A DNA stretch of 51,052 nt from Salpingoeca rosetta. Lineage: Eukaryota > Protista > Choanoflagellata. The stretch covers positions 252,506 through 303,557 of the forward strand of contig JAWQFM010000036.1 in NCBI GenBank assembly GCA_033442325.1, written 5' to 3'. The translations under genes and the position numbers were made by a program. Below are positions 29,646 through 40,991 of this stretch, in pieces. Within the stretch, counting starts at the first letter, position 1. Each line of letters starts with the position of its first letter. Below the pieces are notes generated by a model. It worked only from the letters and a program-made list of their open reading frames with translations. It was not told the origin of the DNA and made no database searches.

Positions 29646-32600
29646 ATGGATGGTTCGCTGGGCGCTCGCATGGCTGCCTTTGTGGCAGCTACTGCTCTAC
29701 TTGTGGCCAGCTTTGGTGTCTCTGATGCCATCCTCGACCTGGGCGATGAGCTCACCTTGGAAGACTTTCTCGCAGACGCGGTATCGTGTGCATGTGTGCG
29801 TGCATGTGCGCATGCGCATGTATGTGTGTGTGTGTGTGTGTGTGTGTGTGTGTGCGTTCACGTGTGTTCATGTGTGTGACTGTGATTGTGGGGTTATCGA
29901 CTGCCCTTGTCCTGTCTCCAGTTCTTCTGCGCATGCTGCACACACACACACACACACACACACACACACACACACACACACACACACACACACACACACA
30001 CACACACACACACACACACACACACACACACACACACTCTCTCTCTCTCTCTCTCTCTCTCTCTCTGTTTCACGCACTTCTGTTTCTAACCCCTACCAAC
30101 ACTTCTCCATCCTGGATCACACATTGGCTCTCAGGGCATTGATGGCTGTGTGATGCTGACCCCATCGTCCACCGGCTATCATTTTGAAAGGGGTCAGGCT
30201 TCAGGCCTCTCACGCTCCCGATGCACTCTTGGTCAGTGTGCCTGCGCGTGCCTGTGCGCTTGCAAGTTTGTTACATCCTGCCGTTGTCGGTCCGTGTCGA
30301 GTCTTGGTCTCATCCCTGCCACTTCATTGGGCCTCGACTCACTACTTGCAGGTGGCGCGTGCCAGTGCCGCCAGTTCGAGGCGTGTGACAACGGAGGTGT
30401 GTGAGCATCAATGGCTCTCATGATTGCTGTCGTTGTCGTTCAGAGTTCAAACCTGTGTGCTTGCATGCACGCATGGGACAATACACGTTTGTATGCCAAT
30501 GATAGGAATCCCTCAAAGTTGTTGTCATCTGCCTTGCCGCACATCCCTTCTCATCACTCTTTCTCTCTTCGTCTCCCTTCATGCCAGATTGCCTCAAGGT
30601 GTACCGCTGCAACGACACGGAATCCAACGGCTGCGTCGCCGTCTCCAGTTGCGTCCAAACCACATTCGACACGACGTTTGAGGTGCACTCGTCAGCCACG
30701 TGCCGCATGTGTACTGCTTCTGTGTGCATGAGCGTTCATTCGTTGCCGGTCGTCTCTCTGTTGTCTGACACCAGACTTTGAAGCAGCCTCGAGTCTTGTG
30801 TGACGCCTCTCACAAGTTCATCTCCCCGAAACCCACACAACACACACACACACCCTGTGATACACGCACGCGCACACATGCTCAGGTGACTGTCGACTGC
30901 CGCGAACCACTTGATGAGCGCGATGAGGACGGTATCGACTTCTTTGGCATGCGCTGGAAGCAGGCCCTCGCTGAGGACTGCAACATTGGACGCGTGAGTT
31001 GCTGGCGTTCTGTGTCAGCGTGTGTTCTATGTTTATGCATGCGGATGTTTGTGTGCGTGTAGGCACGCCCTTTCACTCACGTATGTATACACACACACAC
31101 ACACGCACACTTACACACACAAACACACACAAACACTCACGCACATTCACCTTTGCTGTTTCTTCCCATGACCCAAATGCACACGCACGCAGGTGTGCCG
31201 GTACAACGGCGACACAGCAGCCACGATTGAAGTCATCAACGGAACCACATTTCGCACCACCACCCTCAACCCAGCGCACGTACAGCTGCTACAGGCCTGC
31301 GCAATGACGGTGGACAGGTTCCGTTTCAACTTCTGCTCAGTCACTGGCATTGTCGAAGTTGAACCGACAACGACCACTACCACCACAACCACAACGACAA
31401 CGACAACCACAACAACTACCATGACAACCACAACAACTACAACCACGACTACAACAACAACAACAACAACAACAACAACAACAACAACAACAACCACGAC
31501 TACAACCACGACTACAACCACGACGACGACGACGACGACTACCACCACAACAACCACTACAACCACTACAACAACAACCACGACGACCACAACAGAGTGC
31601 ACACCTGACTGCGAAAGCAGCGTCAACGCCTGCATCGGCAAGGTGTGGTCATGAAATTCATTAATTGCTGTAATTTTTGTCGCTGTTAGCGCTTCTCCAC
31701 CTTGAATGCCATCAACGCTCGACTCACGCACTGTTTCTCCTACGCACACACGTGCACACATACATACGCATGCACACGCATGCATACAAACAAAGGCCAT
31801 TGAGGAGGATGGCGTGCGCGATGCGTTTGGGGACTGCCTGTCCACCACAGATCACTTCAGCGTGTTTGCGTTTGTGCAAATGGGCATCTGTCTTGCTGAT
31901 TGTGATGACATCACGCCGACCACCACCCACGCCGAGGCGCAACGCTCCCTCCGATGCTTGTGAGTTGCATATGCTTGCGGGTGGATGTGCACTTGTGTGT
32001 GTGTGTGTGTGTGCAAGTGTACATGTGTGTGCTCCACGACGTGACTATGCACTGTCCTTGTCAAGTTACTCACGCGACGAACACACATGTCCTTTCTCAT
32101 ACGCCTCTTTCAGTCGCTTCTGCGCCTATGGGTCAGCTGACATGGACTGCGATGTTGATTTCACGACGACGACAACAACAACAACAACAACAACAACAAC
32201 AACAACAACGACAACGACGACGACGACGACGACGACGACGACGACGACGACAACAACAACTACAACTACAACAACCTCAGGGTTTCCCGAAAACATCTGC
32301 CCAACAATCAGCACACCTGTGGCTTCCTTGTATGATTATTCCGATGGTAAAGGCGTTCAATTTACCATTGACGGCGGTGCACCTGTTGGTACGGAGATCA
32401 AGTGTGCTGGTTATTCCGATGAACCCGACAACCAATACGCCAACATCCTCGACAATGCAACGGCGTTTTGGTTCGTATCGACTCTGCACGATCGATACTT
32501 CCACTTTGCAATCTTGGAAGATGCGACTGGCGCGACGCAGACTCTCCAAGAATATGGGCTCAACGCCACATTTACCCACGGCTGCAGTGCGCGGCTCAAG

Positions 32601-38354: not shown

Positions 38355-40991
38355 TTAGTTGATGTAGGAAACCGTGAGGTCGAGCATCTCCTGCTCGGAG
38401 AAGATGTGGCCGGCCTCAAGCTGCTGGCCAATGTAGCCAAGAAGACCACCAAAGTCAAGCGACATGCCGTCCAGCTTGGCCTGGGCAACCGTGCGGGCGC
38501 GCTCGGAGATGAACGGGTGCAGGCCCTCGGGGAAGTCGATGGCGGCGGTCGGCACGCTGAAGCGCGCGTCGTCGTTCTGCCACAGCGGGGCGTTCATAAG
38601 ACGCAGGCCCTCCGGGTTGGGGAGCACGGCAAAGGAGTACGCAAATACGTCGTCCACAAACAGTGTGGAGCCATCGTCTGTGACGGGCGTGTAGAACTCC
38701 TCCTCCGTCGTCTGCGTGATGCTGGTGATGGCAACGGTGTACACAAACCCGGCGTCGTCGTAGCGCACGAGGCGGTCGCCAACAACAAAGTCCTCTGCAA
38801 AGATGAACTCGCCGGCAGGCTTGGTGGTGGATGCGCTCGACACATCCACGTCCTCGCTGGCACGGAAGATGTAGTGATCCGGGGTGGATGTGAGCACGTC
38901 GGCGTTGCCGTCCTTGTCCGTGTAGTGCAGCTCGACAAAGGGGCTGGAGCTGCTGTGGTGCACGTTGATGTATGTCTTGAGCTCGCAGTAGCCAAGGCCG
39001 TCACCACCAGACTGGGCCATGCACAGCACACGGTCACCAGTCTTGAGGTTGCGCAGCTGCACGCGGTCGCCGCTCTCCAAGATCACCTCGGCCCAGCCAG
39101 GGAAGCACGGGAAGGTGGACGGTGGGTTAGTCGCCACAAGTGGACACAGCTGGCTGCTGCCAGCAGGACGTGCGCTGCACACGTGCGTAAACGAGTCACC
39201 AAGGTTTGATGTCACAAGCAGCTGTGCAGAGCCAGTGGAGTTGTCATCGATGACAAAGTAATCGTCGTAGGCAACGCTGTAGGCACTGGCGGCCCAGAAG
39301 TCTGCCATGGACGAAGTGATGTCACCGGCAAGGGAGGTGTTGTACGAGGAGGTGGCCCCTGCACAGCGCACGTCGTTGCCTTCCTCAACAAGAATGCTGA
39401 ACACAATAAAGTCCGCAATAGCCTGCGCCTCGGGAGTCTCGACCGTCGGGCACTCGAGTGTCGTCGTGGTCGTGGTCGTCGTGGTAGTGGTCGTCGTTGT
39501 GGTGGTCGTGGTCGTGGTCGTGGTGGTCGTCGTCGTCACAACATAGTCGCAGTTGCGATCAGCCGTGTTGGCAGCACAGAACCGGCTATGTTTGTGTTTG
39601 TGTGTGTGTGTGTGTGTGTGTGTGTGTGTGTGTGTGTGTGTGTGTGTGTGTGGTGTGTGTGTGTGTGTGCGTGTGTGCGTGTGTGTGCGTGTGTGCGTGT
39701 GTGCGTGTGTGCGTGTGTGCGTGTGTGTGCGTGTGTGCGTGTGCGTGCGGGTTGCAAAGCAAATTGGTGAGTCACATGTGAAGTGCCTGCAAGCAACCAA
39801 AAACTTGAGGTTCACAAGCACGGTAACATTCTATCACAAACTCCACACACGCACGCACGCACAGACAAAAGTACAGCACACGCGGGCTGCTGTTGAAAAC
39901 TCACTAGCACTCAAAGATGTCCTGGATCTCATCGAAGGTCGTGGACGAGGTCACGTTGCCGCACTCGCACGAGTACAGCTGGTCACGCGCAGACACAGAG
40001 TAGTGGCTGTACGACAGCATGCAGTCCGCAAACGTCTCAAAGTCGGGCGCAGGCCAGCTCTATCGTGGGTGGTGGTGGTGGTGGTAGGTAAGAGGTTGCA
40101 GACAGGGGTAGTGAGGTGGAGCGCGTATGTTTGGGAAGGGGGGCAAGAATAGAAGGAGAACAAGGGAAAAGGCAGCACGCTCACATGAAGAAGCCATCTA
40201 CTCACCCTGCCAATGCACGTGTTGATGCTCATCTCGCAATCCGCAATGCAACCAATGTGCGTTGTGGTTGTCGTGGTGGTGGTGGTTGTTGTTGTGGTCG
40301 TGGTTGTCGTGGTAGTGGTAGTGGTAGTGGTAGTTGTGGTTGTGGTTGTGGTAGTTGTGGTGGTGGTGGTGGTAGTGGTAGTTGTGGTGGTCGTCGTCGT
40401 GGTGGTCGTGGTGGTGGTCGTTGTGGTGGTCGTCGTCGTTGTGGTGGTAGTGGTTGTCGTGGTGGTGGTGGTGGTGGTTGTAGTTGTGGTAGTTGTCGTG
40501 GTGGTGGTCGTAGTCGTGGTTGTTGTAGTGGTTGTCGTCGTCGTGGTGGTGGTCGTAGTTGTAGTCGTGGTAGTTGTGGTGGTAGTGGTAGTGGTGGTGG
40601 TCGTGGTTGTGGTAGTGGTGGTAGTAGTCGTCGTGGTGGTCGTGGTCGTGGTTGTAGTTGTGGTCGTGGTAGTTGTGGTAGTGGTAGTGGTCGTGGTGGT
40701 CGTCGTCGTGGTCGTCGTCGTGGTGGTGGTGGTAGTTGTGGTGGTGGTAGTCGTCGTCGTTGTGGTAGTTGTCGTCGTCGTTGTGGTGGTGGTAGTTGTG
40801 GTGGTGGTCGTCGTCGTTGTGTCGTAAGCAACGCGAGCACTCAACACCGTGCACCGGTTGAAGCGGAACAGCGTGTCTGCGGCACATGCGTCAATGTCGT
40901 CAACATGGGCCTCGTTCAGCGTGTACGTGCGGAACAGGTTGTATGCAACAACATCAATCGTGTCGCTCGAATCACCGTTGTACCGGCACAC
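38355..40991 (-). CDS. Hog (Hint + SRR-like) mucin-like protein, paralog 2; last three exons 40991-40206, 40059-39905, 39585-38355; 5' exons lie in the gap
   Basis: VCRYNGD...FRFNRC module, ~185-codon poly-Thr tract, [23 protein letters not shown]. Hint [29 protein letters not shown] (Cys codon 39107-39105), [34 protein letters not shown]. Intron positions and phases match paralog 1 exons 6-8. Confidence 0.9.
40261..40821 (-). repeat. Coding ACN trinucleotide tract (poly-Thr stalk)
   Basis: Uninterrupted ACN codons with mixed third positions. Confidence 0.95.

Follow-up and report, generated by a model that had tools for sequence, protein, structure and literature searches.

Several described systems bear on the proteins that carry a Hog module, that is, a Hint domain followed by a helical adduct-recognition tail. 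The choanoflagellate protein Hoglet of Monosiga ovata combines a Thr stretch of about 200 residues with a Hog domain, and its N-terminus is described as cellulose-binding-domain-like (Snell et al. 2006, in the summary given by PMC2362128). In Drosophila Hedgehog, residue D303 is the general base that activates cholesterol; the D303H variant is active with a broader sterol tolerance, whereas D303A lacks the general base (PMC9163320). Then, how does a poly-Thr Hog locus of another choanoflagellate compare with them? Here, we analyse a stretch of 51,052 nucleotides (nt) of Salpingoeca rosetta, called the window below, which corresponds to C36:252506-303557 (C36 being contig JAWQFM010000036.1) in an assembly of 68 contigs and 55.4 Mb, to which all genome-wide counts refer. 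The window contains one complete gene for such a protein (paralog 1) and two halves broken by assembly gaps (paralog 2 and paralog 3).

The genes in the window are real, and they are a further example of the already-known Hoglet-type Hog proteins. Paralog 1 encodes a signal peptide, a long Thr run and a C-terminal Hog module in one open reading frame (ORF). As far as Hoglet can be compared by its description in PMC2362128, both come from choanoflagellates and are secreted precursors with a very long Thr run before the C-terminal Hog (about 200 residues in Hoglet and 187 in paralog 2) and with no Hedge domain. The first-pass annotation, which was made from the sequence alone, chose the right comparison. 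Hoglet and the S. rosetta proteins differ in the N-terminus, which is described as cellulose-binding-domain-like in Hoglet and consists instead of family-specific Cys modules and an FN3-like sandwich in paralog 1; no carbohydrate-binding module or cellulose-binding domain family was found by Pfam in any paralog 1 exon, Hoglet being compared by description only. The S. rosetta set is also a multigene one, with 10 Hog loci in two subfamilies. We consider it probable that these proteins are secreted Hoglet-type precursors, expanded in this lineage, from which Hog cleavage releases a stalked N-terminal product for the cell coat or theca.

The nematode warthog, groundhog and quahog proteins and XC Thog offer a second parallel, since they too are a lineage-specific expansion of secreted Cys-rich N-terminal domains joined to Hog, with some Hog-less relatives, and the N-terminal part of XC Thog is rich in Thr and Ser (PMC2362128). 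However, the nematode Hedgehog-related proteins have N-terminal domains unrelated to those described here and their Hog modules fall in another clade, the protist clade standing apart with 100/99 support. The closest database proteins to the window genes are the S. rosetta "Hint domain-containing proteins" PTSG_09162, PTSG_07446 and PTSG_08068, whose Hog parts are 89%, 82% and 55% identical to that of paralog 1, respectively, and PTSG_09162 also has the N-terminal modules. These three were the only S. rosetta models obtained from the protein homologue searches, whose candidate lists were limited by poly-Thr words and a length window, and the annotated protein of the window itself was not among them. 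All three are truncated or skip poly-Thr gaps, and none of the three has the full architecture; for example, the PTSG_09162 model skips a gap in the poly-Thr region.

Architecture of the complete gene

Paralog 1 (29646-33413, + strand) consists of eight exons, with GT-AG borders at every intron and an open coding sequence of 2394 nt for 797 amino acids (aa). Its features are listed below, with the evidence for each; model quality is given as the predicted local distance difference test score (pLDDT) of AlphaFold2 (AF2).

29646-29780, + strand: exon 1, aa 1-45 with the signal peptide and an LDLGDELT..DFL motif that recurs in the paralogs and in the Hog protein P0014 of Choanoeca perplexa (ATG, GT donor, hydrophobic core with a Kyte-Doolittle (KD) value of 2.2)
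30135-30231, + strand: exon 2, first Cys-rich module, 97 nt, ending in phase 1 (AG/GT sites; a 97-nt exon also in paralog 3; conserved in seven loci)
30352-30396, + strand: exon 3, 45 nt, GGACQCRQFEACDNG (splice sites, tblastn; a 45-nt exon also in paralog 3)
30588-30682, + strand: exon 4, Cys-rich module (DNA conservation with other loci stops at the exon limits)
30886-30993, + strand: exon 5, Cys-rich module (splice sites, conservation at other loci)
31193-31642, + strand: exon 6, Cys module (VCRYNG...), poly-Thr run 1 (31367-31594) and start of the second Cys module (splice sites, codon counts)
31796-31959, + strand: exon 7, second Cys module, ending in phase 2 (splice sites, conservation; no family match)
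32114-33413, + strand: exon 8 as a whole (eight-exon model)
32114-32276, + strand: first part of exon 8, remainder of the Cys module followed by poly-Thr run 2 (32163-32276, 38 Thr)
32277-32657, + strand: FN3-like beta-sandwich domain, 127 aa, four conserved Cys, ending in ...DPTSTSPT right before the catalytic Cys (AF2 pLDDT 91.5, weak FN3 matches, alignment)
32658-33149, + strand: Hint module, with the Cys547 codon at 32658-32660 (CFPG), His594 at the Hedgehog D303 position, Thr621-x-x-His624 (TPDH) and Ser705 at the motif-J Cys (Pfam, phmmer, Foldseek, residue table)
33150-33413, + strand: helical tail of 87 aa, like the sterol-recognition region (SRR) or adduct recognition region (ARR), with motif K (GLHPFTTQLY) and the stop codon (five helices, pLDDT 76-96)

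The Hog module is the best supported part of the protein. With the Pfam family Hint (PF01079), whose cut-off is 29.7, paralog 1 reaches 76.4 bits and paralog 2 reaches 74.4, and phmmer against the sequences of the Protein Data Bank (PDB) finds Drosophila Hedgehog at E 5e-7, with Cys1 and TPDH/TPAH in register. For the C-terminal 378 aa of paralog 1, the AlphaFold model built from a 46-sequence alignment has a pLDDT of 89.3, and its top PDB matches in Foldseek are the Hedgehog-C structures 6TYY and 1AT0, with a template modelling score (TM) by target of 0.91 and E 3e-12, while inteins rank lower. The likeness to Drosophila Hedgehog-C includes, besides the fold, the Cys1-Phe start, the Thr-x-x-His and the helical tail with its motif K, G-x-H-x-Y...LY; the motif names J and K of Hog modules follow PMC2362128. 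In the tail of paralog 1 the motif reads G-L-H-P-F-x3-L-Y, similar to the GVHWY..LY of the sterol-recognition region of Hedgehog proteins, and G-x-H-x-[YF] is kept across the Hog proteins of the 46-sequence alignment. An intein reading does not fit, with a protein that ends after the ARR, no C-extein and no Pfam intein family.

The nearest relatives of the module lie outside animals. A scan of 1.84 billion representatives gave 165 proteins with Hog similarity, the nearest being from the choanoflagellates Salpingoeca infusionum, Choanoeca flexa, C. perplexa and Monosiga brevicollis and from the protists Pompholyxophrys and Vermistella; animal Hedgehog proteins stand further down in this list. 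The nearest relatives are transcriptome-derived choanoflagellate Hog proteins, in which the N-terminal parts and the Hog module are present in a single ORF.

Between the second poly-Thr run and Cys1 lies the FN3-like domain, with an FN3/Ig-like sandwich fold, four conserved Cys and a C-S-A-R...C-P...(T/S)(D/N)P tail. The first-pass annotation had called this part a variable domain; it is in fact conserved, and recognisable as far as the proteins of S. infusionum and Pompholyxophrys. The structural searches gave only generic beta-sandwich matches (Foldseek E >0.004, Atlas TM about 0.6) and no carbohydrate-binding assignment.

The poly-Thr runs are coding sequence. Run 1 has 76 residues, 75 Thr and one Met, with 35 ACA, 17 ACC, 14 ACG and 9 ACT codons. 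Codon positions 1 and 2 are fixed (AC) and position 3 varies; since all four ACN codons are used, the runs are under coding constraint and are not a pure microsatellite. CA microsatellites are abundant in the introns. Thr runs of 76 and 38 residues in paralog 1, and of 187 and 26 in paralog 2, are a mucin-like trait in proteins of secreted type, with a Pfam Mucin match of 22 bits that lies under its cut-off. The signal peptide is the sole hydrophobic segment of paralog 1, and the precursor has no transmembrane segment.

The N-terminal Cys modules have no Pfam match and no usable Atlas feature match, and the Atlas model of PTSG_09162 has structural neighbours only at TM <0.45; PF26750 appears as a precomputed annotation on PTSG_09162. 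The first 105 aa or so of paralog 1 (LDLGDE..DFL, GGACQ) resemble the N-terminus of a Choanoeca perplexa Hog protein (P0014), with 32% identity and E 1e-7 in a small search. The exon structure of paralog 1 is supported from three sides: the segmentation of paralog 1 recurs at other genome loci in tblastn searches with the modules, DNA similarity to more distant loci is restricted to the predicted exons, and the annotated PTSG_09162 aligns unbroken over the exon 1-5 junctions.

Most of what the first-pass annotation had seen in paralog 1 is borne out: the order of signal peptide, Cys-rich modules, 76-residue run, second Cys module, 38 Thr, 127-aa domain, Hint and 87-aa SRR-like tail; poly-Thr tracts as real coding sequence; N-terminal Cys modules outside any family recognised in Pfam or Atlas; and the absence of a Hedge ligand domain, the Pfam scan of all paralog 1 exons giving no HH_signal match. 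Its intron positions common to the paralogs also hold, as both positions and phases agree, apart from one additional intron after the signal peptide in paralog 3.

The Hog family in the S. rosetta genome

The unit of FN3-like domain, Hint and ARR occurs at 10 loci in the genome, which agrees with the expanded family proposed in the first-pass annotation. The S. rosetta Hog modules group in a single clade, with 100/99 support, which divides into two subfamilies; paralog 1 belongs to one (A) and paralog 2 to the other (B). Therefore, the expansion took place within the S. rosetta lineage. Two further paralogs are Hog-less, at L020:1318-4975 (L020 being C36:336000-344000, 45 kb from the window copies) and at about 1800-5289 of L021 (C21:398000-407000). 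Each encodes a signal peptide followed by Cys modules, Thr runs and an FN3-like domain. The sequences finish in ...TDPTSSSTVA* and ...TNPTSSSIGP*, respectively, with the stop precisely where Cys1 would come, and no Hint was found downstream of either stop codon. Because two Hog-less paralogs end exactly there, the Cys1 position can be taken as a domain and cleavage boundary.

The N-terminal Cys-rich module is found at more than 20 loci, for example C28:745811-746714, C29:377677-378455, C9:1930124-1931067 and C36:233719-236180. As these loci are many more than those with Hint, the module belongs to a broader family in S. rosetta whose C-termini vary. At the Hog loci L015:5316-6900 and L018:3192-1300 (minus strand), on C32 and C25, a shorter related N-terminal Cys module (..QFDQFTD..L..AIQ.DCGLDV / ..LQSC.LRF.RCKV) is accompanied by a single Thr run and takes the place of the architecture seen in paralog 1. 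In addition, runs of N (gaps) lie in or beside the poly-Thr coding tracts at L013, L016, L017 and L021.

Published expression data link one family member and other Hint-annotated genes to particular cell types. PTSG_09162, verified as a member by its sequence, has tens to hundreds of fragments per kilobase per million (FPKM) in thecate samples and swimmers, and 0.2-11 in colonies of the chain and rosette types; for PTSG_10584 and PTSG_11398, Hint genes by annotation only, the values are tens to hundreds in thecate samples versus 0.2-11 in colonies (PMC4054682 Additional file 7). All three are 10- to 500-fold above colonies in thecate or swimming cells (PMC4054682 Additional file 7), and each is assigned either to the cluster "upregulated in Attach" or to "Attach and Swim" (PMC4054682). 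It should be noted that the content of Additional files 11-14 of PMC4054682 appears to be one off from the captions: the "thecate" file has Swim fold-change columns, and the "colonial" file lists thecate-high genes.

Active-site residues and the proposed chemistry of cleavage

Could these Hog modules cleave their precursors as Hedgehog does? The motif CFPGW is present in both paralogs of the window that have a Hint module, which gives the Cys-Phe start of Hint. Cys1 and the block-B His are invariant in the 46-sequence alignment, and over the 10 S. rosetta paralogs and distant protist homologues no change occurs at Cys1, the block-B Thr/His or motif K, the TPDH of the paralogs being aligned to the TPAH of Hedgehog.

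Based on Hedgehog chemistry, the following course may be proposed. The precursor has family-specific Cys-rich modules, either one or two mucin-like stalks of poly-Thr, the FN3-like sandwich and the C-terminal Hog, composed of Hint and a helical adduct-recognition tail. In the secretory pathway, Cys547 (CFPG) of paralog 1 would attack the preceding peptide bond, aided by the Thr and His of TPDH; a thioester would be formed and then resolved by a nucleophile, and a stalked N-terminal product of about 546 aa would be released, possibly carrying a C-terminal adduct. Since the engineered Asp-to-His swap in Drosophila Hedgehog retains sterol transfer, paralog 1, whose general-base position holds His, could form an ester with a sterol-like alcohol. 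For paralog 2, with Asn at this position and Pro at −1, another cleavage route or slow cleavage is more likely. The adduct would be sterol-like for the His type and is less certain for the Asn type. The N-terminal products would probably belong to the extracellular coat or theca of attached (thecate) cells.

Several points weigh against this course. Residue −1 is Thr in paralog 1 and Pro in paralog 2, not the Gly of the Hedgehog G|CF. The position of D303 (D46) is occupied by His in paralog 1 and subfamily A and by Asn in paralog 2 and subfamily B, with no Asp, and the motif-J Cys (C400) is Ser in all S. rosetta copies. Together with the missing Hedge domain and the identity of about 27%, these residues are the differences from Drosophila Hedgehog-C. 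Self-cleavage before Cys547, a lipid adduct and the covalent cross-linking suggested by the first-pass annotation are inferences. The splicing of exons 6-7-8 in the window genes is predicted from conservation and splice signals, and the expression figures concern family members that may differ from the copies in the window. Gly at −1 is also lacking in many non-metazoan Hog proteins of the 46-sequence alignment, His at the D303 position is frequent among the other aligned Hog proteins, and the replacement of the motif-J Cys by Ser is likewise reported for other non-animal Hog domains (PMC2362128).

Within the protist Hog clade, residues −1 and D303 tend to go together: with few exceptions, Pro at −1 pairs with Asn (S. 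rosetta subfamily B, S. infusionum, C. flexa and Pompholyxophrys), and non-Pro pairs with His (subfamily A, M. brevicollis and C. perplexa). The resolution of the Hog tree is too poor to count independent switches of the pair.

Among the alternatives, the one that deserves most weight, although we think it somewhat less than probable, is that Hog cleaves without attaching a sterol. In this case, the thioester would be resolved by water, a glycan hydroxyl or a matrix amine, giving a free or matrix-linked N-terminal product, foremost in the Pro(−1)/Asn type represented by paralog 2. Asn takes the place of the general base in paralog 2 and all subfamily-B loci, and D303A Hedgehog is unable to activate cholesterol (PMC9163320). 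Besides, Bürglin's term for the tails of non-Hedgehog Hog proteins is "adduct recognition region", chosen because their adduct is not known, and the existence of Hog-less paralogs implies that the adduct is not essential to the N-terminal product. However, motif K of the sterol-recognition region is kept in both subfamilies, and paralog 1 has the His of the active D303H (D46H) variant, a residue with which Drosophila Hedgehog-C can still transfer sterol (PMC9163320).

A bolder extension, improbable as a whole in our judgement, is that the family combines two Hog chemistries, the non-Pro(−1)/His type transferring a sterol-like alcohol and the Pro(−1)/Asn type resolving the thioester in another way, such as hydrolysis or ligation to matrix glycans, which together with the Hog-less paralogs would provide lipid-tagged, matrix-linked and free versions of one stalked protein for building the theca or coat of attached cells.

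It is very unlikely that Hint is catalytically dead and that the proteins stay uncleaved, with Hint and ARR as a structural or binding domain capping the mucin-like stalk: residue −1, like the general base and the motif-J residue, departs from the canonical form, and Pro at −1 is unfavourable for the N-S acyl shift in inteins, but the invariance of Cys1, block-B Thr/His and motif K in the 10 paralogs and distant protist homologues is unexpected for a dead domain, and the Hog-less paralogs stop exactly at the predicted scissile bond.

Gene number between the assembly gaps and the meaning of the family

The first-pass annotation had counted at least three proteins with a Hog module in the window. 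Only two Hint modules are present, in paralogs 1 and 2; paralog 3 is visible as four small 5' exons (36906-35735, − strand), halted by the gap at 35611. The features of the two broken paralogs and of the gaps beside them are as follows.

35512-35611, no strand: assembly gap, between paralog 3 intron 3 (right) and an unrelated Q-rich zinc-finger ORF (left)
35735-35779, − strand: last visible of the four paralog 3 exons, matching paralog 1 exon 3, GGTCQCRQFTDGCDNG
36043-36139, − strand: paralog 3 exon matching paralog 1 exon 2, 97 nt
36308-36373, − strand: paralog 3 exon 1b, ..GIVLGDELTSTEFVNTV
36841-36906, − strand: paralog 3 exon 1, signal peptide MKAALCVLAVVALAGLCALTNA (KD 2.9)
38355-39585, − strand: last exon of paralog 2, 26-Thr run, FN3-like domain (39452-39108), Hint (39107-38622), ARR (38618-38358) and stop (Pfam 74.4 bits); Cys codon 39107-39105, Pro at −1, Asn at the D303 position
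39905-40059, − strand: paralog 2 exon matching paralog 1 exon 7, ending in phase 2
40206-40991, − strand: paralog 2 exon matching paralog 1 exon 6, 187-Thr run (about 40820-40260)
41058-41157, no strand: assembly gap immediately upstream of exon 6 in paralog 2; exons 1-5 of that gene are absent from its far side

The 3' part of a gene had been seen in paralog 2 and the 5' part in paralog 3, and this was right: the paralog 2 exons 40991-40206, 40059-39905 and 39585-38355 are the equivalents of exons 6-8 with identical phases, and paralog 3 supplies those of exons 1-3, with the additional intron after the signal peptide that paralog 1 lacks. The two are complementary halves on one contig (35612-41057). 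The gap-free paralog at L020 is informative here. Its positions 1302-2620 match window 36926->35612 at 97.8%, and 3252-3943 match window 41057->40357 at 94%. At the very ends, the 369 bases of window 35612-35980 are 100% identical to C36:338251-338619, and the 228 bases of window 40830-41057 to C36:339251-339478. Therefore, the contig ends inside an exact repeat on both sides, and both gaps are probably repeat-induced. In L020, the two stretches lie 631 bp apart, with exons 4 and 5 in between.

We slightly favour a near-identical tandem gene pair that was collapsed by the assembler; one mis-scaffolded gene and genuinely truncated fragments, taken together, come just short of even. That paralogs 2 and 3 are a single gene, with exons 1-3, exons 4-5 lost in the gap and exons 6-8, whose halves the assembler mis-ordered or mis-joined around the repeat shared with C36:338-339 kb, would leave two family genes in the window. 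This reading, somewhat unlikely to us, is favoured by the exact complementarity of the halves and by contig ends that are identical to stretches only 631 bp apart in L020. Furthermore, the missing halves were not found beyond either gap, and a search of the genome assembly for exons 4-5 or for extra copies of the gap edges returned only the C36:338-339 kb locus; neither another copy of the missing piece nor a further Hint module turned up. However, the 3' half, 1.45 kb of intergenic sequence and the 5' half follow each other without any N (38355-36906), as expected from two tandem copies, whereas a single gene needs a chimeric contig, and collapsed near-identical tandem twins fit equally well.

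For the first-pass annotation as a whole, then, the paralog 1 architecture, the Hint, the poly-Thr and the shared introns stand, and its claim of three or more Hog-bearing proteins is unconfirmed in that form. Its interpretation of a Hedgehog-type Hint with an SRR/ARR-like tail, no Hedge and an expanded family also stands, while the count of three is left unsecured by the assembly.

The surroundings of the gaps can be described briefly. Window 33940-35511 (− strand), between paralog 1 and the first gap, holds a Gln-rich ORF unrelated to the family. It encodes zinc knuckles of the CCHC type, weakly matched by Pfam zf-CCHC_2, as well as three C2H2 fingers, and its 5' end may lie inside the gap. 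An ORF read across this gap (33940-35652, − strand) was rejected as a mechanical join of two unrelated genes, no frame continuing across 35512-35611. Just past the second gap, window 41252-42832 (+ strand) holds a 526-aa ORF with a long Asp/Gly-rich acidic C-terminal tail, also unrelated to the family. A short ACAC-type repeat is present at 35989-36027, within the paralog 3 intron that separates coding exons two and three.

The retrieved database models of the family are truncated and the locus at 35512-41157 is partly mis-assembled, and a complete gene model is now at hand in paralog 1. Hog modules without Hedge are thought to be the ancestral state behind animal Hedgehog. If the two-chemistry family is true, it would show Hedgehog autoprocessing in a structural, pre-animal role. 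Genetic work is feasible in S. rosetta, and the family offers, besides the complete gene model, natural His and Asn variants of the general base, natural "pre-cleaved" Hog-less paralogs and published expression in thecate cells. Therefore, what a pre-animal Hog attaches, and to what, is directly testable in this organism.

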